64,000 nt of DNA, taken from assembly GCA_965202585.1 (NCBI GenBank), contig OZ241827.1, positions 77,934,001 through 77,998,000 on the forward strand. The letters run 5' to 3'. Below, in pieces: positions 1-64,000 of the stretch. This DNA is from Thalia democratica (taxonomy: Eukaryota). A program made the translations under genes and the position numbers. The notes beneath the pieces were generated by a model, which saw only the letters and a list, made by a program, of their open reading frames with translations, did not search any database and was not told the origin of the DNA. Each line of letters starts with the position of its first letter. Position 1 is the stretch's first letter.

Positions 1-3000
1 AGTTGAAGATAAAAATGATAATCAACCACGATTTGATTTTCCGATAATTCGTATGAACTTAATGGAAAACGTCCCAATAAACAGTTTAGTGACAAAATTA
101 TCAGCAAATGATGCAGATAGTCAAGCTTCGAACAGAAATTTCGTTTACAAATTAGTTGGTGCTGCAGACAGAAATAGTTTGGATAAATTTACTGTCACAT
201 CAAACGGTTTGTTTTATTTTGTTGCTCATATATTTCTACTCAGCAGTAGTTTTATTTGAATATCTTAAACAGGTCACGTAAGAACATTAAGTAAATTGAA
301 TCGGGAATGTCAAACTAAACATCATTTAATTGTTCAAGTCTCTGATCAAGGATCACCTGATCCATTTAAGGTTAAATATATTTAACTAATATTCCATTAT
401 CTTTAATTATTTCTAATATTAAATAAAAATTTATTAGAAGTTCTAGATTGCAGACTTTATTTTTTTGTACATTTATATAGTATAAAACCATGTTTATTTA
501 AGTAAATAATTAAAACAATTTTTTTACAGAACAACTGTTACGTCATAATTACTTTGAATGACGTGAACGAACATACCCCTGCTTTTACCAGTCAAAATTA
601 CCGAGCCCAGTTTTTAATCGATGGTGAAAACCCTAGTTTGCCTGAAACCCAACAGGTGTATTGCATGATTGAAGGTAGCAAGTTAGGCGAAATTATTTTA
701 CTTGTAGACGCAGTAGATGACAATATCGGTCGAAATGGTAAAATCACTTATTCTATTGTTAAAGGTAAGTACTTATTACAGTAATTGTAAATATATATTT
801 TTTAGAACTTTTTTTTTTATTATTAAAACAATTTTAAATCAATAGTTTGCTAACAAAATAAAAACTCTTAAAGTAAAATCACATTTTAAAATATCATATT
901 TACTAAACATTAATTAAAAATTTTTTAGTTATAACAGTTAAAACTTTAATGTTTCATAATTAAAATAATACTAGATAAACTTAATTGTATATTTTTGTTT
1001 AAAGAATGTTCTTAAAGTTTTACTAATAAACATTATCATGAGCATTTTTTCAAAGTTTTTGGTTTTGAATAACAAAAGGCAATAGCACTTTTATAATTTT
1101 GTTTTCATAGCAAATATTTCGAATAATTCGATAAAAATAGTTTTATAACAAGCCAAACCAAACAGAATAATAAAATTATTTTGACTTTAATACCCTTTGT
1201 TTAAAGACCTCACCTCTATAATATTCTAATATTCAAAAAATAATGTTGGTCTTTTTAGTAAATGAAATCTTTAGTCGCTCCGCTGTATACAATGAGAAAA
1301 ATCAATCTTTTCTTTACGAACTTGCGCTATGAAGTTTATTTTCTTGTATTTTCGATTTTAAATAAAATTTTTTGCTCACTTCCAAAACACTTTCAATTTA
1401 TCCTAGACCGTATTTATTTTTATAAAATCTTTTTTTTTTCTAATGTACTAAATAATTTATAAAATTTATAAATGTAAACAATTAGTGAAGTATTTTTTTT
1501 CAAATTTAAAAAGTATTTGATACTAAAAATCTTGACAAAAAAGTTCGGAACTAAACAAATTGGTTTCCCTAGTAGCATTATGTAAAAAAAAAGAATAAGT
1601 GACAATTTTTTTGGTTCTAAGTTCTTTGAGGTAAAACTACTAATTTAAAAACTGACAATGAGTTAGAAACGCGTCAGGTTTTAGTATAACTGACAATTAG
1701 ATGTCACACATGACTTTGCCACTTTGTAATTACTTTATACTAACAAAAATTTTCAAAAGTTACATTAAAATTGAACATTTTAGCAATGCAAAATCATTTT
1801 TAGTTTCAGTTTGTTTGTTAGCTTTAGTTTTATGAAAAATTATGAAATGTTATGAAATTAGTTTTAAAATTAGGTTGACCTCAGTAAAGTTATACATTAT
1901 ATCAAATAGTTTCTTGAATTTTTAAATGTTTTGCAAAAGTTTAACCTAGATAAAGTACAAGATATCCGTACTTATTATAAAATAATGGTTTTTAGTCCTA
2001 AAACATCTGCAATAAAATAATTATCTTACTAGAAACATTTATGATTTGCATCAAAACAATAACAGATGTTTACAAAACTTTTAAAATCTACCTGACACTG
2101 ATCTTTTTAAACATTGAAAGTTCTGACACATAATTCAATAATCCAATTGATACCAGTCTGCATCAAGTAACTTATACCGGTTTCAAAATAATTAGTAATG
2201 CTAATTGTTTTTAATATTTAATTACCCGTCAGATTAATCACCAATTCGTTTACTCTGGTTTGTTAGAGATCAAAGAACATAAATAAAATTTCGTGAGTGT
2301 CATTTAGAAAATTGAATTAGTTATTAAATTTAGTTTATTGGAATTCATTATTAATGTTTATTTTAGACAGAGACATGCTATTGAAAATTGTTGCTAACTA
2401 ATCAGTTTGAGATTTTTAAGTTAATACTTTCATTGTATAGTAGATTTAGGTAGCTTTGAATGTATTCAACAATTTAAAGCAAATTTACAGAAATTAGTTT
2501 ATGTTACTATCAAAAACACTATTCGAATAACAATATTTAAGGTTTTAGCATTTTAATGAAACAGTTTATTAACGATTTGTGCAAATTTTCCTAGTAGACT
2601 TTAGCACAAAGTTCTGTAGAGCTTTCAAGTCCCATTATGACGTACGACTGTTGAAATTTGCTGAAAACAAACAAAAGCACAAACTTTATGTCTGGTTCAA
2701 ATTTTTATCATCAATCAAATATTCTGTACTTAGGCGCTTTGAAACATTTAAGAACCTAATATTTAACTATTGATGAATTTTTTTGAAAACCAAAGATTTT
2801 CAAGAAAATAGTTCTTAATAATCAGTTACTTATAAATTAGTACTGGTTTGTATCAACTTAAATTATTATTAATATTTTTATTCACGACATTGATGTATTA
2901 AATAAAAATTTTATTTTTTAGTTTTTTGTTTAAGATGTTTGGACGTATATGCATTTATTGTACAACACTTAAAATTATAAACATAACCTTTATTATTTTA

Positions 3001-6000
3001 GGCAACAACGCTGGAGTATGGAGAATTGACGAAACCACCGGTGGTTTGAGCGCTGTCAAGTGGCCAACAATTCAAAATGAAAACAGCGACATTGTGCGGA
3101 CAGAAATTTTAACTGTAGAAGCTCGAGATGGCGGACAAAATTCTCGCGCTTCAAGAATGAACGTTTCAATTGAAATAAGAAACTTTAGAGACAATTCTCC
3201 TCAATTTAATAATGACGTCATTCATGTTAGCATCGCTGAAAACACAACTGTGGGAAGGTAAGATATTAACATAAACACTATTTAGTTATTAACAGCAAAT
3301 TAATAATTGTCAGTTTTAATTTCAGCTTGGTTGCAAAGGTAACAGCATCCGGTCCAGCCGGTATATTTTATGACGTCACAACAGGTTATTCTGATCACTT
3401 CCGGTTGGATTGGTTCACGGGCAGGGTGACTCTTTTGTTGCCGCTCGACTACGAAACTCGTCGCGATTACGTCTTGTGCGTCGAAGCGAGGGGCGGTGAC
3501 GTAATGGTGACATCATCAATGCAATTAAAAATTCATGTCACTGATGTTAATGATAACAGGTTAAAACTCTAACAATATAAATAACTTGAAATTTTAACAG
3601 CAATTGTTTTACAAACAAAAGTTTTGTTGTAGTAGTATAAAAAGCAAAAATACATATTTCAGGCCTATTCTTGATCAGACAAGATATTCATCCAAGATTT
3701 ACGCGAATTCATCTGATCAAAGTGTAACATCGCAATTATTTGACGAACAAGGTAACGTCTTAAAAGTGGAAGCGCATGATATAGATACTGGATTAGGGGG
3801 ATCGCTTCTCATCTGAATATCAGGATTTCATTGATGACAGATTTTTAGTGGACGAAAGAAGCGGTGCTATTCTGAAACTTAATGGAAACCTTCTCTTTGA
3901 CCATTCATACAATAACATCTATCAATTCATGGTAAATTTAGTATTTTTAGTGTATACGTTAAGAAAAATAGTTAAGTTAAAGAGTTACTTTGATCAGTTA
4001 TAGTTTCTTTTTTAATTAAACATTTTTATTAAGGTTCAAGTGACAGACAGAGGAAGTCCTCCTCTTGTAGCAACTGAAAGAGCTTACGTCACTGTACAAT
4101 CAATTTCTCATTATTCTTTAAAATTTGCTAAAAATCGCTATACGGTAGAAGTACAGCCACCTTTGTACCTGGATTTTTGATTCCAGTAAATTTAGAAGTT
4201 GTTGAAAACGGCTTCAATTCAAAATCAAAGTTAGAATACTCAATAGAGCCGGAAAACCCATATTTTGAAATAAACAGACACAATGGCGAAATTAAAACAG
4301 TTTTAAATCTAATTCCACATCAAAAGAAACAACACTAAATGTAAAAGTATCAACCAAAGAAACTAGTTCTTATACTACTGTCAAAATAGTTCTTCTTGAA
4401 CCTTATAGTGGTGATCTAAAATTAAAAGAGATATATGTTGAAGAAAATTTAAAAAAAGTATGTCAATATAGTTTCATAACACATTTATTTTTGATTTATT
4501 TGATTATTTATTTTATTATGAAAACTTTACTATTTTTCAACATTTAATAAGGATTTAAAATTTTCAGGGAAAAGCATTGTAAGCATTGTATACATTCACA
4601 ACACAGTAGATGTTGACTGTGTTTACACTTTATTGAATCCAAATCCACATTTCAACGTTGTTGGATCTGCTATTCTTACCACCAATGTAACACTAAATAG
4701 AGAAACAAGTTCTTATCATAGAGTACGTTACAAATGAATTAAAAAACTAATGTCAACATAATTAACATAAATCAAATAAATTTAGATTTATCACTATACT
4801 TTAGTTTTATTTAAGTTGTTGTATATTTAAACTGTTAACAAATAAATCTAAACTTTCAGCTGTTAGTTGAAACAAATTATCCAGCTTCAAGTCAAAGTAG
4901 TCGAACTGAAATAAAGATAAATGTCGTAGATGTGAATGATAATGCACCTGAAATTTTACAACAACCGATTAACATATTTATACCTAGAAATGGTAAAATT
5001 GGAACAGCTGTCAAACAGCTTAATATTCATTTAGGTGATAGAATGTATTTCAAATCAAATTTAATTTTTGATTAAAGGCTAAATATTTATTTTACTACAA
5101 TTGTTTATAGAATACTTAACAAACATATCTCCAGATCAAGGCAATTGACAGAGATTTTGGTCCAAACTCCCAAATAAAATTCAGTTTGAACGGTCCCGGT
5201 ACTAAATACCTGAGAATAAATCCTAAAAGCGGATTGGTCACCACCAGAACTTACAAGTCATGTGAAGTCAGAACGACTACTGACGTCACGATAATCGCGG
5301 AAGATCAAGGTAAACCCCAATTGCGAAAAGAAGTGAAAGCGACTTTGCACTTCACAAACGGAAACCCGCTTTCAAAAGGGGTTAAATCCCCTGTTTTTGT
5401 AAAAGCGCGGGAAAATTTACGCATAGGAAGTTTATTGACTGATGAAATTGGATCGCCGTTTACAGATTCTGTTGAGAAAGCAAATTTTGAAATTGTTGAT
5501 GGAGATCCTGAAAGTAAATTCCAAATTGATTTTAAAACTGGTAAGTTATTACCTCAAATTAATTTTGAATAAAATAAAATTTCTTTAAAAAAATGAAATG
5601 AACAAGCAATTGTTATTAAACTAATTGTTATTTAAAGTAAACTATAAAAGTATTATAAAAAAATAGTAGTTTTCTTAAGTATAAAACACTTGTTAGGAAC
5701 TTTATATACTCGAAAAAGTTTGGATAGAGAAAAACAAGATACTTACCAGTTACAAGTGAGAATATTAGAACAAAACAGAAACTCTATCGCTTCAGTAACT
5801 GTTTTTGTTAATATTCGAGACAAAAACGATAATCCACCTATTTTTCAAAATAGCTTTTATTCAGTAAAAATTAAAGAAAACTTGCCATCTAAATCGTTTG
5901 TTACCAGAGTAAGTTGATGTTAACTAGATATTTTTTCATTAAAAATAAAGTTGTTTTAAGTTTTAATTTATTTATGTTATAATAGTTTTTATTTACAGTA

Positions 6001-9000
6001 TAATCTAAGCTATACTCAACAAATTTTTCTTAAAAGATTGATTGTGAATGTGATCATGAATTTTTTACAATTTATTTTATCCTTTAATTTTGCTGTAACT
6101 CAACCTTAAGCTTTACAAATGACATTTTTTTGCCTAAAGTTTGAAGCTTAAGTTTCAAAAGTGCGCATGAAATATGCGATTTAAAAATAATAGTTTTATA
6201 TTTATTTAGGTACAAGCTACTGATGCAGACATAGAAAGCAACGCAATGATCAAATATACAATTCTATCCGGACACGAAAGTTTTGAAGTTGATGAAAATA
6301 GCGGAGTCATATCAACATCTGGTAATATTGACAGAGAAGAAGTTTCTCAGTTTATATTTACAGTAAGAGCAAGTGATTGTGGAAACCCGTCAATGTTTTC
6401 AGATGCTGAAGTTGTTGTTTTTGTTGATGATGTTAATGATAATCCTCCATTTTTCTCTAATGTAAGTGTTTTTGTTAAAGTAAACATATCAGTGGAACCT
6501 TAAAGCTTATATTTTTGTATAAAGTAACTAAAACTCACGATTTTTTTTCAATGGTTTATGTTTAAGTTTTTATTATTATTATTTTTACTAGAAAGTAATG
6601 TCTTAAGAAGAACTTAACCTTTAGTAAAATGTTATTAATGCAGAAAAATGAAGTGTTATCTGTAAGCACTCTAATTGAGCCTGGATCAAAAATAGGTCAA
6701 GTAAGAGCTTACGATTTAGATGTTACTGATCAAAATAGTTTGAAATACTTCATTGAAACTGATGGTCCAATAAATATAGATAAGGAGTCAGGTTTGCTAA
6801 TTTTATAAAATATTATTTTATGAGTGTTCATTAAAAAACAATAAAGTTGAAAAAAATTAGTATGCAAAGCTTATAAGTTATATAAAATACTCATATTTAA
6901 AATTGATTTATAAAATTTAATTTCTACAACGTTCCTACTTACAGGTGAAGTATTTTTAAATGATCTAACTGAACCATATGAAAAACGTAACAATATTTAT
7001 GCAATAACAATTGTTTCTGATGGAGTATATTCCACATCTACTAATCTTCAAATTAAATTTGTTACTAAATCTACACGAGTATTAGAGTTTCATGATTGCT
7101 CAATAAACAAGCCTAAAGTTTTCCGTATAAAAGAAGATGTTCCAATAAACACTTTTGTCGGAAAAGTAAGTATACGCTAGTTTTAAGATACTTGGTTTAG
7201 TATTCCTATATTTTAACTAATATTTTTCAGCTAAATTTATCATCTGATTCTGTTAATCCAGTAATATTCACCACTGAAACGACAACTTCTGATTTTTCTC
7301 GATTTAGGGTAATTCCCTCAACTGGAGAGTTGTTCACTCAAGATTCCATCAGAAGAGAGTTTCTTACATCTACAAATGACATCATAAGATTTGCTGTTAC
7401 AGCTCAGTCGAGCTCAGGTTTAATAATTGTTTAAAACTATTTAAATGTATATAAAAAATTATGCTAAATTTTGGTTTTACCTTATAGTTTTAAACAACAT
7501 ACCTGATTATCCTAGGTTAATTTCTTACTTAAACGTCTAATTGGTTTATATATGATACTAATTTGACATAGACTTATTCAAAGATAACAACAAATTACGC
7601 TATTAATTTAAAAAAAAATGTTTTGAACTATTTTGATATATTGTTAATTTGATATATTCTCCTAGTTTATATAACTTGTTTACATATGTTATAGAAATTA
7701 AGATAACAAAACAATTATTTTATATGTTACAACTTATTGAAAAGTTATTCGTTTACAGATATAGCAAGGTGTGAGACTGTTATTGTTATTCAAGACGTCA
7801 ACAATAATAAACCTGAATTTGATAGAAAAAATTATCAGGGAATTGTCGTAATTAATCAAACGATTGCCGGTGAACATTTACTGAAAGTTTGTATTTTGGT
7901 TGTTAATTTTGCAATTTATTATAATAATAAGAAGAATTTATACTTATTTAAAACTAAAAAAACTAATTATGCAATAATTTAAAAGATAAAAGCAACTGAT
8001 AATGACATTGGAGTGAATGGAAAAGTATCTTACAACTGGTACGATAAAAATAACAATGCTTTTCAATATTTTGATACTATTACTGATAGTGGAATAATCT
8101 ATTTAAAAAAGCCACTTACGGAAAAAGGTAGGAACTTTAAATTGATTTTTTTTAATTCAAGTTTTTATTATAAATATGATTGAATAGTTATTTAGCTTAT
8201 AATAGTGGAAATGAAATGATATGTGCATATTTCAGTTTATTTTATTTGTTTTTCGTAATATAAAGTCAAATATTTGTTGAATGTCTCAGTCGTGAAACGA
8301 ACGGAAGTTTTAAATTGAAGCAGACATTAATAAAAAAATAAATTTAACTCCTGTAACAATAACTTTATTGTCTGAAATAATTTTACACTTACTACTCATA
8401 ACAGCACAGTTGCAAACAATTGATTAATTTGTTGCAGATGAAGAAAGTTTTAGTTTTTTTATTCAAGCAATAGACGGAGGTGGGAAATATTCTCTTGTTG
8501 GAGTGAATATTAATGTTATTTCAACAACAATTCATTTACCAGTTTTTGAAAAAAGCATAATAAACGTTGTTGTACCTGAAGATATAGCTATACGATATAA
8601 AGTAAGTTTCCCATTTTTTTACAAATTGTCTTAGTATTATTAATCGTTAAATAAACTATGAGTATGCATTGTGACGAAAGAAACTTTCAGAAATAAGTTG
8701 AACAGTAAGTCACAAAATATTATATTTATTTCAAGTGTTATACAAACATTTGACTTATATTTAAAAACATACAATATTAGTTGAAAAAGTAGAGAATAAA
8801 AACTGATTAGATTTAATTTATATATTATTCATTATAGATTGCTCAACCACAAGCTTTAGCAAAAAACCGAGAAATTTACTACAAATTTGCAAATCATCAA
8901 GGTAATTACTTTTATACATATCAATGCTATCATAATAAACCATGATAACTTGGCAATAATTTTTTGTCAAGTACAAAACTGTTAATTAATTTTTGAAGCT

Positions 9001-12000
9001 TTCGTTGAAAACTATTTAAACCAAGTGAAAATCTTTGCTAAACAATAAAGTAATAAAGTTGAAAGGTATTCAATGAGAAAATAATCGTCATAACTAAGTT
9101 ACAAATATGTGATAATAAAACAAACAGATGGTGATGAAACACAAACGAGAAACTTCAAAATAAACAAACTGAATGGAGCAATTACCCTAACACAAGAGTT
9201 AGATTATGAAAATAAAAATTATTTTGAGCTTATTGTTGTTGCATATGTAAGAGAAGAAACTGAACTTATGGCTGAATCTAAAGTAAGAAAAACTTTCTTG
9301 AAGTTTTAAAAAACTGTTTGATTTGAAGTAAACAATTCAATTTCAAAGAAATTATACTGTTAGGTTTAATAATATATATTTGTAAACAACACAAAATATA
9401 TTGCTTATTCAGATAACAATTGAAATTGAAGACATAAACGACAATCCACCTCAGTTTGATAGTCTTTCATATAAAACTTTTGTTGTTGAAAATAAATTGC
9501 CATATGAACCGCTTGTACAAGTCAAATGTAGTGATAAAGACTCTACAAAATATTCAACTATCAAGTATAGGTAACGATTTGAACTAAAATACCAAATATT
9601 TATACTGTCTTTTTTTAAAACTAAAAGAAACTAGATATTACATATAAATTAGATTTTATTTAATTGCTTTTTGTTAGCAGTAAAGTGTAAAAATACTGAA
9701 GTTAACTCAAATGAATTTAATTAAATTTTCGTAAATAAGTTTACTTTAGTTGATAGTACTGCTTAATTAAAATATTATAAAACAACACTTAGTTTTGTAA
9801 ACTGAATTATTTTTTTTCAGGTTCAATGAAAGTCATCCATCTTTTAATATCAACCCAGTGTCTGGGATGGTTTCCCTGAAAAAATCTCTGGACAGAGAAA
9901 ACTACATTGAAACAAAAGGAACAATTAGTCTCAAAGTGTCTTGCACAGACGGAAAATATGTTGATAGTTCAAATATAATTGTCACAATTAAAGATGTTAA
10001 TGACAGAAAAGCTGTGTTTAAAAGCGACTCAAACCAGTTTAATATTTCTGAAGGGTAAGTGTTGTATAAAAACTATAGAAGTTTAAATATTTATGTGGTC
10101 AAACAAAATTATTTTTTTTGTTTCTTTCAGGGCTAAAGCAGGATACAAAACAGCATCAGTAATGTCAGCGGTAGATCAAGATTCTTCAACAAATGCTTCA
10201 CTTGTAACAACAAGTATTATTAAAGGAGATCCTCTTCATTATTTCGATGTGTTTTTTCAATCGAAACACTCTTTAGAAGCTTCAGGAATGTACTTAAACA
10301 TTGGATTTGAAGTAAGGATTTGCATATGTTTAAACTTAAATGCTTTGTATTACAAAGTGTTGTAATAATTCTACTATTCTTAGGTTGCTAATGATATTGA
10401 TTCAAACATTCCTGATGTAAATGAAGTTACTGTCTCAGTTTTTGACGGAATTCATCACTCTTATGCACAAGCTACTATAAACATTGTAAACCGAAAGTAC
10501 AAACTACCAATTGGAAAACCGCTTTGCAAAAAGGTTGACTTCTTTTATTCCACTTTAGTTACTACGTTTTATACTTAAAATAGCTTTACAAATTAAAAAA
10601 ATACATTATTACAAGATATAACAACTATATGCTACGGTCGTTAAATACATTTTATTTTTTTACAGCTATTTTACAACGTATCTGTCAATGAAAACAATAA
10701 AGTAAACTCACAAATAGCTACAATCGACATTGCAGACAAATATAGTAAAGCTATTTACACTTTGATTGGAGAATTTAAAAATAGATTTTCATTCGACGAA
10801 AGTACTGGTTAGTAAAACTTTAAAAGTAAACCAACAGTTCTATAACTATTATACTATCTAAATATACTTTTTTAGGAATAATTTATGCGACTGAAAGTTT
10901 AGACAGAGAAGAAAGAGATAGCTACCACTTAAACCTTCAAGTTAAGTACTCGAACGATTTAAAGTGCCTGATACAGGTAAAAAAAATTAAAACAACTAGA
11001 TTAATTAATCATTCAAAAAAAAAAAACGAATTATGTCTTACTCAAACTTATTTTCTAGATCTTTATAAAAGTGTTAGATGTGAATGACAACTGGCCAACA
11101 TTTACAAAAAGTCAATTGAGGGTTCGTGTAAAAGAAGATTCGGTTGTGGGAAGCGTTGTTTGTCAATTTGCTGCATTTGATGCTGACATTGGTTTGTTTT
11201 TTGTTATCAGTTACAACTACCTGAATGAAAAAATAAACTTAGTTTATAACAAAATAAAAAACATTTTTTTAAGATTATTTTTTGTTTCCAAACAATAAAT
11301 AAGCTTTAAAAAAAAACACACATAGTATTTTAATTTAACTCCTTTAACTAACATTTAAGGTGAAAACTCTCAACTGAAATATGCTATACAACGTCACAGT
11401 TTAGATTCAGTTCCTTTTGAAATTGATGAAAAACATGGTTATTTGATATTACAAAGACCCGTTGATCGTGAAATTAGAGACAAATACCTTTTCAACATTA
11501 CTGTTAGTCAAATTTTTTCTTAAACTTAATAAAACTTTAGTTACAATTTTAATAAAGTTTCTTAAGCAGTTAAAGTTACAATAGGTGAAGTTTTATTTTG
11601 TCGACTAAGCTGAAGAAAATTGGCAAACATGCTTTCATATACAAACATAGAAACATATTGTTAACTCTATACACGAGATACAACTATAGTTTTACAATAA
11701 TTTTTTTTAAAGGTAAAAGACCAAGGGATTCCAGTTAAGTCAACATCAGTTCAAGTTAATTTAAGAGTAACAGACGTGAATGACAATGCTCCTGTATTCA
11801 ATCAAACAAATGTTAGTTTTCAGTATCTAAAATGTTTTATGAATAAAAATCCGTTGACCGTTACTTATTTACTATAAAATTTACTTTACAAAGAGTGGTG
11901 TGCTCTACTCTAACAAAATAAAAAAATTAATAAAGAAACCTTTTAATTGTATAATTAATATTAATCGACTCTTTTTTTTCAGTACAAAGCTGAGGTTAAG

Positions 12001-20648: not shown

Positions 20649-20719
20649 AAAACTTTACTTTTGAGAAACATTCCCTCTTTTCTCGTTTTCAGTGTCGAAG
20701 TATTTTTGCTGCTGCTTGA

Positions 20720-20729
20720 AATAAATAAA
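20720..20729 (+). other. Candidate polyadenylation signal(s) for unit 1 (overlapping AATAAA); equivalent site follows unit 2 near 57180
   Basis: aaataaataaaa about 70 nt after the stop codon and conserved in unit 2. AT-rich background makes this weak. Confidence 0.35.
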
Positions 20730-26463: not shown

Positions 26464-26541
26464 AAATAATTGTTTTGGAATTCTATATATTTCTTAAACA
26501 GTAAAATAATTGTTTTGAATTTTATATATTTCTTAAACAGT
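26464..26541 (+). repeat. 39-bp tandem duplication (2 copies), single copy in the paralogous region near 61235
   Basis: aaataattgttttg(g)aatt(c/t)tatatatttcttaaacagt occurs twice. Confidence 0.8.
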
Positions 26542-41485: not shown

Positions 41486-41847
41486 GAACTTAACCTTTAG
41501 TAAAATGTTATTAATGCAGAAAAATGAAGTGTTATCTGTAAGCACTCTAATTGAGCCTGGATCAAAAATAGGTCAAGTAAGAGCTTACGATTTAGATGTT
41601 ACTGATCAAAATAGTTTGAAATACTTCATTGAATCTGATGGTCCAATGAATATAGACAAGGAGTCAGGTTTGCTAATTTTATGAAATATTATATTTTGTA
41701 AGTGTTCATTAAAAAACGATAAAGTTAAAAAAATTAGTATGCAAAGCTTATAAGTCATATAAAATACTCAAATTTAAAATTGACTTATAAAGTTTAATTT
41801 CTACAACGTTCCTACTTACAGGTGAAGTATTTTTAAATGATCTAACT

Positions 41848-41906
41848 CAGGGGTCGGCAAACTGCGGCCCGCGGGCCAATTGCGGCCCGCGAAAGGTAAA
41901 TCTGCG
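41848..41906 (+). mobile_element. 59-bp terminal fragment of a hAT-Charlie/Buster (MER58-like) element at a deletion breakpoint
   Basis: CAGGGGTCGGCAAACTGCGGCCCGCGGGCCAATTGCGGCCCGCG matches the terminus style of MER58/Charlie elements as I recall it. The preceding 8 bp atctaact fit the nnnTAnnn Buster target preference. It replaces unit-1 interval 6971-8950. Confidence 0.82.
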
Positions 41907-42064
41907 TGGCAATAATTTTTTGTCAAGTACAAAACTGTTAATTAATTTTTGAAGCTTTCGTTGAAAACTATTTAAACCAAGTGAAAATCTTTGCTAAACA
42001 ATAAAGTAATAAAGTTGAAAGGTATTCAATGAGAAAATAATCGTCATAACTAAGTTACAAATAT

Positions 42065-54000: not shown

Positions 54001-57000
54001 CGTCATTGGCTTCCGATTCAACTTCGTTTCAGAAAATTCCCATGTCTTGGACTGACTATGAGCACAATCATGTAAGTAATATAATTGTTAACACCAAAAA
54101 TATTAGCTCAATTTGAAGTTGTTATTTCTGTTAATTAATTACTATAGTTCACACCTGTAAACTGACACAATGGTTATTATATTATTTTAACTATAATAAA
54201 AAAAACACAATTTTTCTATTTATAAGTATGATTAAATAAAATTTTAAGTTATTGTAAGCTTTCACTGACTGTTCATTAAAACTATAATTAATTTTTTTAA
54301 GTATATGTTTAATTTCGTTAAAACAAAATGCTTCAACTAATTTTTAAACCATCACAGTTCAGCGGAAGTATATCTGGTTGTTCGTCTTACAGCAAAAGAA
54401 CTCCGATCCCGTCTGCGAAATCACCGAAACTGTTCACCAGGATTCCCAGATTCCAGCAGCAGTCAGTTCACAAAGTAGCAAGCAAGCAGTCCATTGCAGA
54501 ACAGCGTAAGTTTGATAACAGTAGTCGAGTGGTAGTCAGGCGTAGTATGATTCTTTATTAACTTTTTCAGTTGACTTTCTTGTTTTATATATTATTTTAA
54601 TACACTTTTCTCTGTAGTTTTAGCAGTGTTTTAGACTCTAATAATAATATGTTTTTTTTTTGGAAAACATTTAAAAAATCCAATAGTTTTAAAGCTTTTT
54701 TTTATTTGAAAAACATGTTAGTTCTCACTTTTAAAAATTCTTATAATGTAAAATTTTCTTTAAGACTTGATCACTTATCATGTATAATTGTTAATAAATT
54801 AATTCAATCACAGTTTTAAAATATTAGCAGTATGTTAGCTAGACGTAGATATACACTGATTTTGTTTTAATTTTTCAGTAAAACTTTATAATTTTTAGAT
54901 TTTCAAATTTTTAACATTTATTTTACTTAATTGTATCTTTTGAAGAAATTTTTGATTGTGTTTTTATTATAAGATATACTTACAAGTTTAAAAATATTTA
55001 ATATCTAATTTCAGTTCTAAACAAAGTTAAAAAAATATTAACTTTTAATTAGAACATCTTTAAAATGTAAATTTTGTAACTTTGTTTTTTTTTCTCACTG
55101 TTTTCTTAACTAAAATTTGTTTAACCACAGTTTTGTAATCCTAAAAAGTTGGAAGAAAACCAAAAAAATTGAATTTAGCAGAATTCAACCGTAATACAGG
55201 TCTATAAATAAAAAGCTTGGTTATGGTGATTTTTGTACAAATTTAGCATGTACTCAAAAACGTGGTGTTAATCATTATAATAAAATAACTTCAATTGTTT
55301 TTTTCTGAAATTATCTGAATTTTGAAAGTTACTTGTTTATGCTAACTTTCAAAATCTTTAACATGAAAGACTTGTTAAAATTACGTAAAACATTGAAAAA
55401 TGATTTTGTATTTATGTAGTTAGGTATATCCGGTTATAAGCTTTTGCTTGTTGTTTCAAAATTTAAAGATAAGTATGTCAACTATTATTATCTATCCTGT
55501 TATACTTAGTGGTTTTACATCTGTTGTACTGTTGTTTGTTTTTAAGTTTCATTTTAAAACTTTCATCTAAATTAAAATTTTCTAAGTTTACCATGGTTAT
55601 TAAAAAAAAAAGTGTTAATTTTTCTGGCTTCAAAAATTTTTAGTTTTTTTTCTAAACGTATTTTTTTAAACTCAAGTGATAACACTTATTTTAACTGCTC
55701 TTCATTTTTAGCATGTAAATTATTAAGTTGTGATGAATTTTATATTTCGTTCAAAACAAAAGTTATTAATGGTTTTATTAGGTTGTTATTTTGTAATTCG
55801 AAATATAACTTGTTACTTTTGTTACGAAATCTCAAAGCATGTTGATAAATCTCATAGCATGTTGTTTTTGCATGTGTATTATCATGTAACTTGCATTTAT
55901 TTCAGTATGTTATATTAGGTTTTTCTATACATGTTTATTTTTTTTACAAGAAGTTGTTTTATTAATTGCATATATTGAAAAGAAAACTAGTTACCTAAAT
56001 ACTTAAAAAAAAGATTATTAAGAACCGATTAACTCTTTTAACTCAATGAGAAAATGTTAACTTTTTATGTTTAACTTAAAAAGAAACTTTAAATAAGTTG
56101 TAAAAGTTTCTAAAACTCAATTATAAGATTTGACGAATCCTTTTAAATACTTAAATAATTTTATTCACCAGATTACGCATGGGACGTTTCTGATTGGATT
56201 AAAAACAACTCGTCGTCGGCCAATCACATTCCTGAACACGTGACGTCAGTACCAGTGAGGCGGAACAACAGATCCGACGGTGTTACGTCATCAAACAATC
56301 GCGTGACGTCACATTACAACTTGGCTGGGAGAAAACCGAAAAGGAAGGGGAGAAAATGCAGCGACGCTTCCACAACTGATTCAAAACTGGTTTGTATAAA
56401 TTTATAAACTTAAAAAGTTTTATAAGTATAAATATATATATCTAGACACAAAATAGACAAGTGAATGTTGATAAAACTAAACATTTGTAGCTTTTATATA
56501 ATAAGTATATAAATATTTACGTAAGTTACAAGTCAAGATCATTAAATGACAAAGTAATTATTTATTAGTTTTGATTCGAGTATTTATTTTTTCAAACCAG
56601 ATACGTCATCCGCAAGACGACGAAAGCTCCCAGTATGACGTCAGTAGCGAGGTTACGACGGCTGCCAGGCAACCCAGGAGCTTATTACGTAGCAGCTATG
56701 ACGTCACCAACCCCCGATTCGAACCTTCGAACTTCCCGCCATCCGTTTCCATGGAGCACGAGCGTTTCTCATTGGAAGAAAAAATCTCTGAGGCCTCGGA
56801 GGATTTCTATGACGACACGGACGAGTACGAAATTTCCGCTCCGATGCCCACCGACATTATGACGTCACTTTTGGAGGGCGAGATGGAGGTGGACATGCCG
56901 ACTCCGGCGAAGGCGCGCAAAAACAAGTTTCACCCCGACCAGTACCTGCCCGCCGTCGTCACCATGGCAACCAGTTCCTCGTCGTCGGTCGACGGTGACG

Positions 57001-57107
57001 TCACTGTCCAGTTGCTTGGCAACCAGCTGCAGATGTCGTCGCTTTCCGACTTGGAAGAAGATGACGTCAACAATTCGTTGATGTTACGTCATAATGACAA
57101 CGCTTGA
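42065..57107 (+). CDS. Potential N-terminally truncated Fat ORF of unit 2 (24 exons, 1874 aa from ATG 42065; about 8 cadherin repeats, EGF, LamG, EGFs, TM, cytoplasmic tail; no signal peptide)
   Basis: Exons 42065(acceptor-defined start 42084)-42238, 42369-42526, 42777-43010, 43087-43267, 43340-43489, 43622-43763, 43833-43933, 44019-44151, 44320-44462, 44673-44771, 44943-45093, 45178-45347, 45546-46044, 46230-46454, 46639-47764, 48174-48389, 48590-48796, 49099-49244, 53287-53502, 53615-53721, 53898-54071, 54358-54505, 56172-56389, 56601-57107. Sum 5625 nt = 1875 codons; no stop or frameshift seen and all splice sites are canonical. Expression is unproven. Confidence 0.5.
49785..50278 (+). repeat. 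Left arm: about 33 copies of the 15-mer gatca(c/t)ttctaaccc
   Basis: Direct inspection; produces the spurious (EVIGL)n and (RVRSD)n ORFs on the minus strand. Confidence 0.95.
52645..53137 (-). repeat. Right arm: about 33 copies of the same 15-mer in inverted orientation (gggttagaa(g/a)tgatc)
   Basis: Reverse complement of the left arm, including variant units (aagatc, aattaaac) at mirrored positions. Confidence 0.95.
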
Positions 57108-60100
57108 AAAACTTTACTTTTGAGAAACATTCCCTCTTTTCTCGTTTTCAGTGTTGAAGTTTTTTTTGCTGCTGCTTGAAATAAATAAAAGTTTTAATGA
57201 AAGCAGCTTGACGGAAAGCCTTTTAATTTTTGCTGTGATTTGAGGCTTCATTTTTTAATTACTTTATATTTAAAGCTTACATTTTGACATACAATAAATT
57301 TACCTTTTCTAAATAATTTCTCAGTTACCTTTTATAAATAAAATAGCGTTTTTGTTACTAAGTACTTTTTTCTGTTGTTCAGTTTTTTTAATTAGTTTTT
57401 TACAGTAAAGTTACTAAGTTACTCTCTAATATTTTAATCATCCTGTTAATTCAACTAAAAGTGCCTGGACGAAAATTTTAAATATTCAAGAAGTTTGAAT
57501 CTGCGGATATTTTTTAATCGAACATGAGTTTATGTTATATGTGTATTGTGACTGTTTCAAAATTGTGATGTTAAACAAATAAACACAAATCATCTAAATA
57601 GTTTTTTATTTATAATGTAAGTTTTTTGATTTTGTTTCTTAGTTGTTTATATGTTTAACATTTGATAACGAATATTAAAATACTTAACTAGTTTAAGTTT
57701 ATAGGAATATTTGAAAACTGCATGATTTAGTTAAAACATTATTATAGTTTTATTTCAGAGTTACATTCTTATAAAACAACAATTAAATAAACTGTTTTTA
57801 TTTAGTCTAAACAAGTTAAACCATTTTATACTCTTGCTTTTATCTAAATTTAAGATTAAACCACTTTATGTTGCAATTTTTTTTTGAAAGTAAAATCTGA
57901 ACATAAACCTCTAAAGTCTGTTCAAACTCATTAATATTAAGTCGCTAAAAGACTATAAAGAAAGGAATAAAAAAAGTTTTTTTTAATTTATAGCACGTTT
58001 TGAAACTAAAAAATTATTTTAAGTTTTCTGAACCCTTAATTCAAACACTATTGGCTAACTTTTCAGTTATACTTGGTCGATTTCAAAATACATTTATACT
58101 GTCAAATTATGTAGTGAGAAATAAAACATCGATATTCTTTCGGTTTGCACTTAAACTAGTTTGACCTTTTGGTTAGTTCGTTTGTTATGCTGTAGAAATG
58201 AACCCGTTTTGATCTTAAATAAAAGCTGTAAAATTATACTTTGATTACTAAAAATAGTTTTCGAACTGCAAAATAACTTACTTGAATATTGAAACTAGTA
58301 ACATCTAGTACCAAAGTGTTTAAAATCAAGATTTTAAAACAAACTAAAACTTTTATTTGGCTTTGATATACGTGTAACACAGTTATAATCGTTTTATTTC
58401 TGTAAAAAGTTCTTTATATTGATTGTCAAGAAATAAAAACCAAAATAACCTTTTTGTTACCTGAAAAAAAAAATCTAAACACCAACTTAATCACATTATT
58501 AACTTTTAAATACGTTGATTAGAAAGTTAGGTTCCATACGCAATTATAACGTTCTAAAGTCTTCTTGGAAGAATTTATTTATAAAAAATATCAAGGACTT
58601 TGATGGTTTATCACAAGAAACGAATATAAACATGTATAAAGAATCGAAATGGTTAGTTTATTTTTGTTACAGTTTGAAATGTATATAGGAAAAAACTAAA
58701 TAAACATTAAATTTCTACTTTTTTGTTAAACCCAATTAATTTTTTAAATGGTTGTTAATAATAAAAATTTGTGTTTCATGATATGCTAAATATTACTTTT
58801 TTTAATTTTTAGTACTATAATTTAGTGATTAAGTTTTTTTATTGCTATTTTGTAATTAAAGTTTTTTAAACTTTTTATTCACTCTTTTTTTAAAAAGTTT
58901 ACCTGAAATGTTTTCGTAGTTTGAACTTTTATTTAACTTTGCATTCAACGCTTTGATTATTATAGTTATTTTTTTTCCAGAACCAAAATTTCTGAAACTT
59001 AACTATAAACAAAATTAAACTTTACAATCATGACGTAGGACTTAACATGCTTAAAAACTTCTAAAAGTTTGTGGTTTCATTTTTACTTAGTAAATAGACA
59101 TTTGAACTTGAATAAAGTTTTGTAGGAGTGTACTTTTTACAATTATTAAATAGTTAAAAAAATGAAAATGAAATTAAGTCAACTTAGTATGTAGATAATT
59201 TTAAAGACTTTGAATTTCTAGTAAATAAGAGATAATTTGCAATTATTTAGCAAACAACTTATTTTTCGACAAGTTTAATTTTTAGTAAAATTTTAGTAAA
59301 CATTTTAAACGCTAAAATTAACATTTGTTTTCTTTTTTTGATACTACGCTTAAAATGTAAACTTTCAAAACAGAATGAAATTCTACTCATTCAATTGAAA
59401 GCTTATGAAAAATGCGAGAGAATTTATTTGAGAGAAATTAAAAAAAATAAACGAAGTGAAGCATAACATACTCTGCCGGGAGATTTATGATTGTAAACTA
59501 CAAAGAACAAAATATGTATCAGTATTCACGATGTCTTTAATTAAACATTATTTATTACAAAGTAAACGTTCGAAGTTTGGTTTAATCGACTTAAATATAA
59601 AACGTGTCGTTCTTTATAAAAAAAATATGTTTCTATTTTACAAGCTAAAATAATTTTTTTCTCTCAACATCATAAATTAACAAAACATTGTTTTATAAAT
59701 AAACATTTTAGACTTTCTCAAAATAAGCATGTTACGCCATAAGGCTTAAAACTTCCAACAATCTCCTAAACCTTTTACTAGCACTTTAATATAGTTTTTT
59801 AAACAAATGCATTTTTCATCAATGATCTAAACAAAGCAGACAACGTTCTGCATGAGTGAGTGGAGTCGAACCGGTGCAATAATCAGTAAATTAACGGGAG
59901 AAAATCCGCAGACATCCAACGTTACTTGCCAGATCGTGGATTGTAAATCTAAAAGCTGACTAACTTATTAAACTGTGGGTTGCGTGATCGCTTTAATTTT
60001 ATTAAATTTGCGCACGAAACAAATTTACTTCGTTTTTTAGGATCAGCAGAACATAAAAAGTGCGTAGGTCAAATATGATATTTTAGATGATAGAGACCTG

Positions 60101-63100
60101 AAATTTTGGAATGGCTTACAAAAGTTTGTTTAAATACCGAAATAAAATTAACGGTCCTGGAAAGAAAATTTTCACTTATTCTAGTAACTACAACTGTCAA
60201 GGATTATAAAGACAACTAGCTAAAATTTCATTCAGAAAAATTTAGTGCTGACGTACTTTAAAATTATTTCCATCGTTTATTGGTTGCATGCAAGCGATCA
60301 GACTCTAAATTGACCAATGGGGGTATTTCTTACAGCGCAGTATCAAAAGGAAGCTTAGATGAAGACACTCTGTTTGTGGTGGACAAAATTAGTGGGTCAA
60401 TTAGATTAATGGGTCGTTTAGAGGCAAGAGTTACAGGCTAAGGATAAGAGCAAGAGATTTTACAGGGAAGAGCACTCAAGCCAGACTGGTTGTCAATGTG
60501 TTGCCTAGTAACCTTTGTTCGCGTAATGGCAATATGAAAAATAAACTGACCATGATAAATGTAATTGAAATAACTTCCCCTGGACAAGTGGTTGGTACCA
60601 TAAACACTACTAGATCTGATGTTGTTTATGACATCATAGATGGTTCGGGAAAGGGAGTTTTTAGAGTTGATCGATATACAGGTCGGTAAAAGATTGATTA
60701 AAAGAAAATACTAGTCCTAAAATAAGTACATACTTTAAAATTTTATAAGAAAAAGTTAACTTTTAGTATTTTAACTTTATCAATTGTATTTAATGTGAAT
60801 AACTTTTAATTTGAACTTTTTAAATCTAGTTTTTACTTTTATAGACAAGCTATTTTCAGTTTAAAATGTTTTAGTAGTATCAAAACATGGTGTGTATTTT
60901 AAATAATAATTAGCCTGATTTTTCTTGTTTTCATAGTTAATATATCCTCTTTTTATACTTTTAAAACTGTCTAAGGTTCAAAGAAAACATAATATAAATT
61001 TTTAGTTTTTATAGAAATTTTGCACATAATTTTAAAGTTAGAACATAACATATTTAATTAATTTTACATATAAACATAAAAACCGAATTTAATTAATTTT
61101 TTAAAGTTATTTTATTTTTATCTAACAATCAAAAAACTTTCTAAAAAAGTTTTTAAATTTTAATTTTTTCAAAACCTAAGGTTTAAGTAAACAAGTTCAG
61201 TTGAATTTAATGAATTTTTGTTCAAACAAAGCTTAAATAATTGTTTTGGAATTTTATATATTTCTTAAACAGTCAAACAATTGTTTGATACGTTTTGTTG
61301 AATCGTGACTTGTTCATGTTTGCATGTTTTGCTTTTCATACAAACAAGCAGTAATTGCATACCATACATTTAATCTTTAATTGTTTTTAAATGTTTATAA
61401 ACTATTGTAAAAATTTCCAATTCTCAGTATGTATAAACGTTTAAATTACCATAACATTTTTATACAATATTTATTTTAACAGTTTATTACTAACAAAACT
61501 ATGTTTTACTCCTATACTTGCATATAGGAGATCCTCAGTTGTTGTAAATAGATCTGAAAAATATTTTTTGAACCAATGAATGGAAGTTCCATACATAGCT
61601 AAACAATAAAATTACATAAAAGTTTTATAAGTTTAAAGACAGTGTAGTTATATTTGTTATATTTACTTATAAACAGGGAAAGTATTTTTTTGACATACAA
61701 AAGCTTTCAATGTATACATATTAATAACTTGTTTAAACGATCAAGAAATTCGGCAAAAACAACTACTTATGCCTTCTTATTGAAGATTATCGGTTTAAGT
61801 AGCAAAAAGGAAATTTATTTTTCTGAAAAGGATGTGCTCTATAAAGCTTGTTTATCACTAAACTTGGTTATTACGTCACAGTAGTGCCCTTAAGCTGCAA
61901 TAGTAATTTCTCCTAAGAAATTTATATGAAGCTACTTGATGAAGTGAAACAGTTATGATGCTTGATTTTTCTTACTTGAATAAAAAGCTTATACAGACAT
62001 CCTTAAAAAACATATGTTGTACAAGCATGTTAAATGTTATTGTTTGTCTACTGTCTAGTTTTATCTGAAAGCAGTTATGTACTTATAAAACAAGTTTTAA
62101 AACTTACTATAACTATATTTTTATCGTGTTTCGTTTTTCTAAAAGAAATAAACAAATTAAAACACAAACTTATTTTTGTTCTATGTTTAAATTTTTGGAT
62201 TTTATTCTTTAAATATCAAAAAACTACTTGAGGTTATAGTCGTTCTTTTTTCTTAGGAAACAACATAGTTTGAAAAAAATGGTTTCTTACTTATATTTAA
62301 TGACAAATAAAGTGCAAAATTTCTATCTATGTTAATCTTTAAAGTTACAGTGATCTTAAATCAAGACTATCAAGAAAGCACAGTTTTTTGCTATTTTTTC
62401 TTTATTAAGTTATATCTTCGAAAAAAGGTAAAATAAGGAAATTCTTAATCAATTTAAATGACAAATTTCTTTAATATATGATTTTAAACATTTATGAGAG
62501 AGTAATTTGAAGTTGAATTAGAATTTTTTTAGTTAAGCCAAGTACTAAGATATTTGTATTTAAATTAGATGCTTTTGCTTCTGTTGAAGTTTTAGCTGCT
62601 TCATGAGCAATTAGTCTTGTGTAATTAAAAGAAAAAAGAAAAAAAGCATAAGCTGAATAGTAGTAAAAAGATTCAAGAAAGTGCTTTATATTTGCTCAAA
62701 GTTTAAATTTCGGTTGAAAAATTTACAAAGAAGAATTAAACAAGAATAATAACAACAAAAGAAATAAACTTTACCCGCTGTATACACAAATAAGTAGAAT
62801 GGTAAATACTTGAAGCTTGTTTAAGTTACACAAAAGGTTCTCGACAGTTTATAAGTCTTTGTGCCAACAAAAAAATACTTTTTATTTCAAAAAGAGCAAG
62901 AAAATAATAATAGGGTCGGGCATGAGTCATATCTTTTGTTTAGGAAGTTGAGTTTGTACAACGCAGATTCTTAATTTGAAAGTAAAGAATAAATTAACAC
63001 CTTATTTTCTCCCCCTTTTTATATTCATACTTAGTTGGGTTTTAGCTCGCTTTTGTTGTTTTTGTCTTGGTATAATTTAAATAAAATTTAAAGTCTTAAG

Positions 63101-64000
63101 TACATATACACAATTATTTTAATTCTAAACAATTTAATTTTTGTAATACAACAAAAATCTTTAAACAATTTTTGAAAAACCAAGTAGGGAAAGTACTCTA
63201 TGTTGTTTAAACTTTAAATGACAGCAAAATATTAAGTCCCTTGACATTAAAAATCGGTCAAGTACATACAATAAGAAGTATAAAAATACTTGTCAAACTC
63301 TAGTTTGACACAAAAACTATCATGTTGAATTACAGCAGAGAAAATTTTTTCAAAATGACAGCGGGTTTGTATACAAAAGTCTCATTTGTCAGCTGTTTTC
63401 TTTCATGGTGCACTTGTTTTTAATTTAAGATGACAAGCAAAAACTAGAACTTAAGTTTCGAGTGCTTGTCTAAAATACAATTTCAGTCAAAATTTTAAGT
63501 TGTTCTTGCATTGGGTTCTTTTCTGTATTAATGCATAACTTATGTCAGATATTCGTTTTTGCAAACTATCTGTTTGAAGTAATTTTATATTTTTGTATAT
63601 AATCCATCCATTTTTTATTAAAAATCTTAGTATTTCTTCTGTGAGATTTACTTCACAGTTTCAGTATAAAACAAATAGCTGTAAAAACATAATAGTTAAG
63701 AACACAATAATTATACGGTATTAGTTTCATTCAATATATTTTCCTTGAAAAATGGTTTTTGAAAATAAAAAATCTACTAAAATATACTGATTGTAAAAAA
63801 TGTGTGAAAACATTTTATCAGTAACATATGCATGCCCTTAATTAATTTGATACAGCATATGTTTTAAATGATCCTGTTCTTTTTTTAGTTTTACTGACAT
63901 TTTGGTAATTTATCATTACGCCTGTAAGACTTAATTATGAACAGAAGCATACTGGAAATATGTTTGGATATGCTTTTTTAATTATCTTTTTGTGTTGTCT
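57108..64000 (+). repeat. Paralogous copy of unit-1 downstream region 20649-about 29240 (lacks the hAT insertion)
   Basis: Co-linear alignment, roughly 88-92 percent identity by eye, continuing to the window end. Confidence 0.92.
59830..60681 (+). pseudogene. Degenerate large cadherin exon starting unit 3 (paralogue of 25050-25913)
   Basis: VTTTVKDYKDN*LKF (TAG 60217), NGGISYSAVSKGSLDEDTLFVVDKISGSIRLMGRLE, frameshift, then SYRLRIRARDFTGKSTQARLVVNVLP...FRVDRYTG|gtcggt. Confidence 0.8.

Follow-up and report, generated by a model that had tools for sequence, protein, structure and literature searches.

The results of our analysis indicate that the window, meaning the whole stretch of 64,000 nucleotides studied here, probably comprises units 9 to 11 of a tandem segmental-duplication array, in which a head gene (unit A) is followed by headless, decaying copies that owe their clean 3' halves to mutual overwriting. 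The array consists of 11 head-to-tail units of a giant Fat1-type cadherin gene, occupies about 455 kb in two blocks with a unit period of 33-43 kb, and lies entirely on one 108-Mb chromosome-scale contig (C2). The window carries its last three units, all on the plus strand: W1 (unit 9, window 1-24.5 kb), W2 (unit 10, window 24.6-59.4 kb) and the 5' part of W3 (unit 11, 59361-64000). A tandem array of at least three Fat1/3-like units had been proposed in the first-pass annotation, and self-comparison bears this out for W1, W2 and the start of W3, within an array that is larger than proposed. Positions 986-29208 are in fact repeated at 39277-63962, with 98.1% identity between 8951-15900 of W1 and 41907-48879 of W2, 93% between 16684-22892 and 53144-59369, and 88-91% over the remaining repeated stretches; in the same comparison, 3162-6605 and 6970-8951 of W1 have no counterpart in W2. 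Searching the genome, we found exon 3 11 times, a LamG-region exon 9 times and the last exon in 10 places, all within C2:77.55-78.00 Mb, and neither of the latter two occurs again downstream of W2. The units are colinear with unit A, introns included, and each has its own last exon and stop; divergence between them is 2-18%, and deletions, frameshifts and insertions private to individual units are found. Outside the window, sequence was read over 200 kb (C2:77.54-77.74 Mb), and units E to H were examined as 4.2-kb pieces.

The first-pass annotation had also suggested looking elsewhere in the genome for an intact full-length Fat1/3 gene. Such a gene appears to be provided by unit A, the first unit of the array, which lies 390 kb upstream of the copies in the window and could be modelled as open from end to end, with 52 exons and 4677 amino acids. 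Its intactness is that of a local gene model, in which exons 5, 7 and 8 are weakly supported, obtained with a retrained gene-finder; the junction of the 64-nt exon 28 was set by hand, and a loose end of the RNA contigs at 42082 agrees with it. According to this model, unit A is an open 4677-aa gene under purifying selection. Its exon 1 (C2:77545278-77547941), the single match in the 802-Mb genome, supplies the ATG and encodes 888 amino acids (Pfam Cadherin, E 9.5e-75), among them the signal peptide and roughly the first eight cadherin repeats; on inspection, the protein starts with MKKLPNYKNQNLQSLCLWKFVFLISLSFVTS, an ATG followed by a hydrophobic leader. In the other units, the whole-genome search returned no exon 1 but merely relics of 40-80 amino acids at 47-75% identity. 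Every unit except A starts within exon 2, after such a small relic, and hence has neither start codon nor signal peptide, both of which are absent from the units in the window.

The model of unit A aligns as a single stretch with Fat3 of Pelodiscus sinensis (P0012; residues 36-4435 against 41-4377) and with Fat1 of Ciona intestinalis (P0007, XP_018670260.2; 218-4377 against 1-4252), and its open frame is colinear with Fat proteins of 4556-4667 amino acids. The closest full-length relatives are named Fat1 or Fat3 at their source. These full-length references came from a representative search, as a 419-aa exon used as query matched one 383-aa fragment from a marine metagenome. Like the Fat1/Fat3-type protocadherins, represented here also by the Fat1-like protein of Glandiceps (P0013), unit A has a signal peptide, a run of cadherin repeats, LamG and EGF modules, one TM segment and a tail with the motif FHPxQYLP, and it aligns with them end to end at 27-29% identity, the exons in the window corresponding to the 3' part. 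Fat1-3 are usually single-copy, dispersed genes. Here, in contrast, the gene heads ten headless tandem copies, and those in the window lack exon 1 and carry frameshifts and deletions.

The window units were annotated by projecting the 52-exon model of unit A onto them. The window opens within exon 10 of W1, and exons 10 to 14 (1-3559) are cadherin exons, open in projection at 273-370, 530-764, 3002-3257 and 3326-3559, with a Pfam Cadherin match on 2-256. A lesion zone follows in exons 15-18 (3663-5020), with a 20-nt deletion in exon 15 (between 3806 and 3807), 1-nt deletions in exon 16 (between 4161 and 4162, and between 4326 and 4327) and exon 17 (between 4587 and 4588), and a GT-to-CT change of the exon 18 donor at 5019-5020; translation in the inherited frame meets many stops from exon 15 onward. 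Exons 19-52 (5135-20648) then run open for 7671 nt, or 2556 codons, with AG/GT splice sites kept and neither stop nor frameshift until the normal stop at 20646-20648. This block encodes cadherin repeats, Laminin_G_2 (Pfam; 13638-14894 and 15190-15450), EGF (15612-15848 and 16015-16158), a TM segment in the exon at 16828-17043, where hydrophobic FPYLILIIVILIVIIVATIATAVGCY is followed by RRRR within 16791-17060, and a Fat1-type tail; the Pfam Cadherin, Laminin_G and EGF matches fall on plus-strand exons. LamG and EGF modules are therefore present between the cadherins and the single TM in the window copies. No Pfam family matches the tail; its motif FHPDQYLP is shared with P0007 and P0012 (as FHPSQYLP in the latter), its YAWDVSDW resembles YHWDTSDW of P0012, and the alignments with both proteins extend into the tail, making it of Fat1-3 type rather than Fat4/Fat-like.

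Between W1 and W2 lies a spacer, the 3' flank of W1 (20649-25386, plus strand), with self-repeats at 23002-23165 and 24398-24563 and a 120-nt exon-1 relic at 25049-25168 (C2:77959049-77959168) that corresponds to residues 351-390 at 75% identity and contains one stop. The 5' part of W2 (25387-39276), delineated by self-comparison and projection, is decayed: it begins with a decayed exon-2 relic (25387-25924), and exon 3 is open (29811-29988), but exon 4 has one stop and exon 6 three, and a +1 frameshift interrupts exon 8. Deletions have removed exons 9-12 (at the junction between 39276 and 39277), 14-21 and 23-28, and what is left between them (39277-41847) is intron DNA, a fragment of exon 13 (41318-41489), an open exon 22 (41520-41667) and, from exon 23, its initial 27 nt. 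The junction where exons 23-28 were lost is occupied by a 59-nt remnant of a very high-copy repeat (41848-41906, unstranded), recognized by its contig depth of 3.3e5-4.4e5, against about 300-400 beside it, and by many-flanked loose ends at 41841-41848 and 41888-41906. Downstream, W2 is clean again: exons 29-46 (42084-49244; last cadherins, LamG and EGF) and 47-52 (53287-57107; TM, cytoplasmic tail and normal stop) stay open for 5717 nt, or about 5.6 kb once three in-frame boundary shifts supported by RNA are taken into account. A 3.37-kb foldback-type insertion (49779-53143, unstranded) interrupts the intron that separates exons 46 and 47; it has no counterpart in A, B, C or W1, the units with which W2 was compared, and has 491-nt inverted arms that are 96% complementary, each made of 33 copies of a 15-nt unit. 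W3 shows an exon-2 relic at 60160-60692, and its exon 3 lies 553 nt past the window end (C2:77998553). That W1 and W2 share the same 24 clean 3' exons, about 5.6 kb, and that all their lesions lie 5' of this block had already been noticed from the letters of the window, and projection agrees on both counts: exons 29-52 are open in both units, and all stops, frameshifts and deletions are 5' of them. Neither unit, however, encodes in an uninterrupted frame the roughly 30 or more tandem cadherin repeats of a functional Fat1/2/3-type protocadherin. Because exon 1 is wholly missing, which is the main cause, the copies are dead at the 5' end. The window copies keep their introns, lie beside their parent, lack the 5' end and have disabling lesions, and we infer from these features that they are unprocessed pseudogenes, presumably promoter-less given the loss of exon 1.

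Evidence of exchange between units comes from the uneven distribution of their similarity, as sliding identity along the unit is mosaic. Between B and W2 it drops from 99.8% at the unit junction to 83% at a distance of 4 kb, A and W2 reach 99.5% over exons 28-33 and at 31-33 kb of unit A, and 99.4-99.6% over several kb of the 3' block, and A and B reach 99.4% at 25-26 kb of A. Identity to A is 95-99% over the 3' two-thirds and 82-86% near the 5' edge of the repeat, where the flank of A is unique. In the site patterns of A, B, C and W2, the best-supported quartet grouping also changes from one part of the unit to another (chi-square 504, df 28, p 1e-88): A with C and B with W2 is in front at both ends of the unit (63:5:0 at the start, 109:5:0 at the end), A with B and C with W2 leads 37:0:1 at A 40-42 kb, and A with W2 and B with C leads at A 32-40 kb. 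Such switching implies that the units recombine, and phylogenetic incongruence along a repeat, with near-identical tracts flanked by diverged ones, is the pattern of concerted evolution. Mechanistically, unequal crossing-over and gene conversion would keep copying sequence between units, A and pseudogenes included, and this exchange would be most intense over the 3' two-thirds and least so towards the 5' edge of the repeat. In W1 and W2, the 3' blocks are probably open because they were recently overwritten, and not because they function, private mutations since then being too few for a stop to be expected. The 5' parts would be older, with less exchange, and broken further by deletions and repeat insertions, which could explain why the copies are dead at the 5' end and clean at the 3' end.

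Counts of private changes on exons 29-52 are informative in this respect. With a neutral N:S expectation of about 3.6:1, we obtained 5:12 for A, 8:8 for W1, 24:4 for W2, 30:8 for B and 19:25 for C. In a wider alignment of nine units, misalignment caused by deletions affected the counts of B, G and H, and from that set these units were assessed by exon-by-exon projection. W2 and B fit neutrality; W1 (p 0.011) and C do not. Given the 16 private substitutions of W1 and the 28 of W2, the probability of seeing no stop is 0.46 and 0.26, respectively. Sister units, moreover, are broken within the same 3' block: in B, exon 34 contains a stop, exons 40-41 are absent and 207 nt are missing from exon 52; a +1 frameshift affects exon 41 of C; and G has lost part of exon 43 and the whole of exon 44. 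Together with mosaic identity, quartet switching and the 24:4 ratio of W2, these lesions support one of the two readings offered by the first-pass annotation, that of pseudogenes kept alike in their 3' halves by gene conversion. Pure neutral decay, however, does not predict all of our data. Divergence in the 3' block is 2-3.5 times lower in exons than in introns, even between two headless copies (1.10% against 3.44% for W1 and W2), and neither W1 nor W2 has private exon indels in this block, where plain-context intron indels would lead one to expect 4.7 in W2 (P 0.009); these findings, like the counts of W1 and C, are left over by a purely neutral account. All of these departures could reflect exons being less mutable than AT-rich introns, exchange favouring better-matched exons, or import of already selected A-allele variants. 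GC-biased conversion was also considered, as a cause of the GC-rich 3' exons, and discarded, since GC content follows exon length and is just as high (54%) in the unique exon 1.

Expression was assessed with Logan assembled contigs of a marine metatranscriptome, in which assembly drops rare variants; they derive from a wild sample and differ by 2-3% from every reference unit. The contigs are spliced at predicted sites, confirming the exon model: of 15 splice joints listed in 42238-46637, 12 match the model exactly and three are shifted in frame. RNA contigs also join exons 28-29, 21-22 and 22-23, joins that W2 is unable to make, and continue with other sequence at 41484, 41520 and 41842. At the four sites where W2 has a private letter (G at 42403, G at 45858, C at 46688 and A at 46778), the RNA contigs have the common one. 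Differences between the RNA contigs and the reference are S 18 to N 17, as expected of a constrained expressed gene. At several positions the expressed wild allele agrees with particular reference units: at 42877, 42962 and 42972 with B alone, at 42930 with both B and C, and at 46970 and 46982 with both E and G.

The other reading put forward in the first-pass annotation, that the array is a source of short Fat receptors or ICD proteins, finds little backing here. Some headless units, W1 above all, might still be used through a new internal or repeat-derived promoter, yielding a shortened Fat, which would retain the tail, TM, LamG/EGF and membrane-proximal cadherins, or supplying the signalling ICD, with selection against frameshifts keeping the 3' block open. 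Frames open for 7.7 kb in W1 and 5.7 kb in W2 down to the normal stop, intact splice sites, exons less diverged than introns and free of indels, and the 8:8 ratio of W1 would all agree with such use, and two in-frame ATGs upstream of exon 29 in W2, at 42065 and 42101, are found just past its repeat remnant. A restart at 42065, however, would give the leaderless N-terminus MIIKQTDGDETQM, with nothing hydrophobic ahead of about 1400 normally extracellular residues, and insertion as a type I receptor would not be expected; exon 1 being unique to A, there is no signal peptide for any other unit to use. The changes private to W2 look neutral, B, C and G are broken within that same block, and the RNA shows full-length context only, free of W2-private letters. 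The CRE-type palindrome TGACGTCA, which is dense in the 3' exons (36 matches against 0.39 expected), could in principle mark internal regulatory DNA, but it is equally frequent in unit A, the unique exon 1 included, and hence is a property of the gene and not of the copies. We therefore regard production of short Fat proteins as unlikely.

It is less likely still that the array, or the part of it in the window, is an assembly artefact produced by uncollapsed haplotypes or by an over-expanded repeat. It is true that Logan DNA contigs of two runs (X1 and X3) carry only the common letter at W2-private sites, and that the contigs listed leave the stretch at the W2 junctions (41481-41489, 41847 and 41907), so that features private to W2 rest on the assembly. 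Short-read assemblers, however, collapse near-identical repeats, and the absence of private letters from such contigs is to be expected; X1 and X3 nonetheless contain 79% and 69% of the 31-mers sampled from the W2 stretch, which would be hard to obtain without W2's own variants. Furthermore, we are dealing with 11 units and not two, 2-18% apart, with private deletions and frameshifts and, in W2, the foldback element, all on a single contig. Another improbable alternative, about on a par with that of short receptors, is that the headless units are a library of donors, maintained because conversion from them would diversify the ectodomain and tail of the expressed head gene. Unit A does take part in the mosaic, with its near-identical tracts shared with B at 25-26 kb and with W2 at 31-33 kb, both groupings that pair it with one of these units dominate some segments, and the wild expressed allele has letters of B, of B and C, and of E and G. 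Exchange alone, however, is no proof of benefit, and conversion by broken copies is more often harmful, as with human CYP21A2 and the PKD1 pseudogenes; the shared letters may be old polymorphism or come from RNA of another unit in that population, and hypervariability is required by none of the roles known for Fat cadherins. Mutual overwriting among a head gene and decaying, headless copies is thus the explanation that we prefer.

A literature search found no paper on a Fat-gene array of this kind, nor on Fat arrays in tunicates. Human PKD1 with its six PKD1P copies, and CYP21A2 with CYP21A1P in the RCCX module, are instances where broken duplicates stay similar to the working copy through gene conversion. 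As in our array, the duplicates are partial or broken, highly similar over part of the gene, and exchange sequence with the working copy; the PKD1 pseudogenes, however, correspond to three-quarters of the gene, counted from its 5' end, and are scattered over the chromosome arm, while here the 5' end is what is missing: ten 33-43-kb copies retain the 3' part and stand directly head to tail behind the working gene. In the Pcdh alpha and gamma clusters, each variable exon has its own promoter and is joined to shared constant 3' exons. The likeness is limited to tandem cadherin-coding repeats in one transcriptional orientation, as there is one promoter-bearing head here, each repeat has its own terminal exon, and all 15 listed RNA joints are ordinary ones between neighbouring exons of one unit, which speaks against alternative splicing of repeated units to shared exons. 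The pseudo-V arrays of chicken immunoglobulin genes, which lack promoters and leaders, also adjoin one functional gene, with conversion between them; that conversion, however, is somatic, programmed and useful, whereas we see germline mosaicism only, and our units are whole multi-exon gene bodies instead of V segments. By analogy with pseudo-V donors, the ten headless copies might form a standing germline library, trading tracts with the one Fat gene that is expressed and so shaping its allelic diversity. The place of A in the mosaic and the B and E/G letters of the wild expressed allele permit this view, to which we nonetheless give only slight credence.

These findings have practical implications, as automatic annotation is likely to call several long Fat-like genes here when the head unit alone should count as a gene, and clean 3' halves should not be read as a sign of short Fat receptors. 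Exchange with broken copies would also be a recurrent source of loss-of-function alleles, as it is at human CYP21A2 and PKD1. More generally, the array is a large and well-resolved case of concerted evolution among gene-sized repeats, with a built-in control in the form of one selected copy against ten headless ones, and would lend itself to measuring how conversion declines as the end of homology is approached, and to asking whether exons are exchanged preferentially. If the headless copies did turn out to act as donors to the expressed gene, this would represent a new way of diversifying an adhesion receptor.

Comparison of the window with itself (72% A+T and no N, from an 802-Mb assembly) revealed a single long direct repeat, 986-29208 recurring at 39277-63962, whose identity depends strongly on position: 98.1% between 8951-15900 and 41907-48879, 93% between 16684-22892 and 53144-59369, and 88-91% in the remaining parts, with 3162-6605 and 6970-8951 of the first copy having no counterpart in the second. 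Long open frames on the plus strand encode Cadherin, Laminin_G and EGF domains (Pfam), together with a transmembrane stretch and a tail bearing Fat1-3 motifs. The array of at least three Fat-like units proposed in the first-pass annotation was borne out, as marker-exon searches of the genome identified 11 units, here called A (the head) to H, W1, W2 and W3, of which D and W3 are partial. In these searches, a 419-aa exon of the LamG region was found nine times on the window's contig (OZ241827.1, here C2; 77.576-77.981 Mb), exon 3, used as 5' marker, 11 times, with its final copy 553 nt past the window end, and the last exon in 10 places, none of them downstream of W2. Units D and E are separated by ~80 kb of non-array DNA; A to D were compared from full sequence (200 kb), E to H from 4.2-kb pieces only. 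Behind D (C2:77678000-77693000) lie older fragments of exons 3 and 6-13, with 43-86% protein identity and partly duplicated at an offset of 9.1 kb, which are remnants of earlier duplication rounds. Unit G has two last exons, 6.3 kb apart (C2:77870112 and C2:77876432), and the spacer after W1 holds a 165-nt direct repeat (23002-23165 and 24398-24563; 93% identity, spacing 1.4 kb) with PDPD-rich open frames on its minus strand.

All lesions in W1 and W2 lie 5' of open exons 29-52, in agreement with the earlier description of both units as dead at the 5' end and open at the 3' end. On the plus strand, W1 carries a 20-nt deletion between 3806 and 3807, 1-nt deletions between 4161 and 4162, 4326 and 4327, and 4587 and 4588, and a splice donor changed from GT to CT at 5019, after which exons 19-52 (5135-20648, plus strand) run for 7671 nt without interruption. 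W2 begins with an exon-2 relic. Its frame is interrupted by stops (exons 4 and 6) and a frameshift (exon 8), and it has lost exons 9-12, 14-21 and 23-28 to large deletions; its exons 29-52 are open (42084-57107, plus strand). At the last of these deletion junctions sits a 59-nt remnant of a very high-copy repeat (41848-41906), whose contig depth in two DNA runs is ~1000 times that of its flanks, with many different flanking sequences. An intron within the W2 block contains a 3.37-kb insertion (49779-53143), missing from A, B, C and W1, with 491-nt inverted terminal arms that are 96% complementary, each made of 33 copies of a 15-nt unit; no long open frame was found in it, and it looks like a foldback-type element. 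Of W3, the window contains the decayed start only. The clean 3' block is not array-wide. In B, exon 34 contains a stop, exons 40-41 are missing and exon 52 carries a 207-nt deletion; in C, exon 41 is frameshifted; and in G, exon 43 is partly and exon 44 wholly lost.

An intact full-length Fat1/3 gene, which the first-pass annotation proposed to look for, is modelled at the head of the array, in unit A. Here the repeated part is preceded by a 2.7-kb exon 1 that opens with an ATG and the leader MKKLPNYKNQNLQSLCLWKFVFLISLSFVTS, continues into cadherin repeats and has no second copy in the genome; in the remaining units exon 1 is reduced to a relic of 40-80 residues. One such relic (25049-25168; aa 351-390, 75% identity, one stop) lies between W1 and the exon-2 relic of W2, and equivalents occupy the same place elsewhere, e.g. 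at C2:77587360 and C2:77879668. Because an exon 1 relic stands ahead of each exon-2 relic, the original duplication probably started within exon 1, most of that piece being lost later. The script-built model of A, based on full-length Fat references from a representative search (P0007, Ciona Fat1; P0012, turtle Fat3; P0013, acorn-worm Fat1-like; names are the sources' own), comprises 52 exons and 4677 codons, uninterrupted from ATG to TGA, with exons 5, 7 and 8 weakly supported. It aligns in one piece to P0012 (36-4435 against 41-4377) and to P0007 (218-4377 against 1-4252). The gene is a Fat1/3-type protocadherin, of which A is, as modelled, a complete copy.

Logan contigs assembled from two metatranscriptome runs of marine samples (X7 and X8) and aligned to 41300-47299 provided 15 splice joints; 12 of these agree exactly with the model and three are shifted in frame, involving the donor of exon 38 (near 44771) and exon 40, which runs 45178-45348. 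A loose contig end at 42082 matches exon 28 at its end; this 64-nt exon had been placed manually. The three shifts bring the shared block to ~5.6 kb, and the frame that opens at the ATG of 42065 to 1874 codons, reproducing both first-pass values. GC rises with exon length in A and in window exons 41, 43 and 52; the four longest exons (1, 41, 43 and 52) have 54-57%, short exons ~30% and introns 22%. The palindrome TGACGTCA occurs 36 times within 3213-57069, against 0.39 expected from shuffles (e.g. 17480, 17507, 17534, 20177-20537 and 56636-57062). All 19 matches in W1 fall in coding exons, 16 of them in exons 40-52; in A, 25 of the 26 matches are exonic, with four in its unique exon 1.

At the 5' edge of the repeat the units share 82-86% identity with A, a value that climbs to 95-99% across the 3' two-thirds, and the ranking of unit pairs changes with position. 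The B-W2 pair has 99.8% identity where the unit starts, 98.6% where it ends and 83% at 12-13 kb of A; at 31-35 kb A matches W2 at 99.4-99.6% and B at 95-97%. For the quartet A, B, C and W2, all three groupings lead in some segment (63:5:0, 33:15:13, 92/100, 37:0:1, 19/26 and 109:5:0; heterogeneity chi-square 504, p 1e-88). These shifting ranks and groupings show the units, A included, to be recombinant mosaics. In W1 and W2, the 3' blocks would then stay readable through recent overwriting and not through function, and exchange may weaken toward the 5' edge because the flank of A is unique there and the copies are cut by deletions and insertions.

A rival explanation, that the headless units still make shortened Fat proteins, keeps as its main support two observations for which residual constraint is one possible cause: in all unit pairs, W1 against W2 included, divergence of 3'-block exons is 2-3.5 times lower than that of introns, and private exon indels number zero in W2 against ~4.7 expected (P 0.009). 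It is also possible that exons are less mutable than the 22%-GC introns, or that exchange favours the better-matched exons. Private changes in exons 29-52, for which neutrality predicts N:S of ~3.6:1, are constrained in A (5:12), neutral-like in W2 (24:4) and B (30:8), and intermediate in W1 (8:8) and C (19:25). As 4.7% of possible substitutions create a stop, the probability of having none is 0.46 for the 16 private substitutions of W1 and 0.26 for the 28 of W2. The RNA contigs, which come from a wild relative population, show 2-3% divergence from each of the reference units and are not assignable to any one of them; their differences from the reference (18 S to 17 N) indicate constraint. They connect exons 28-29, 21-22 and 22-23, and one 4.4-kb contig spans both sides of exon 13, products of which W2 is incapable; at the four W2-private sites within 41300-47299 they show the common letter. 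Expressed-allele contigs carry letters private to B (42877, 42962 and 42972), common to B and C (42930) or common to E and G (46970 and 46982), a pattern consistent with exchange between the expressed gene and its copies, or with old polymorphism. W2-private letters and junctions were absent from the DNA contigs of runs X1 and X3, which collapse the units; their absence neither confirms nor refutes the assembly.

The window units lack a start and a signal peptide and their cadherin runs are broken, so they do not qualify as a working Fat1/3 protocadherin. Our literature search found no paper on a comparable array of a Fat gene; the nearest parallels are PKD1 and its pseudogenes and the RCCX module, with pseudo-V arrays alike in structure. 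The original observation holds in every respect that could be tested, and what it describes is an ordinary kind of feature, though unusually large and clean. The window units fit the picture of an array of unprocessed pseudogenes undergoing concerted evolution.
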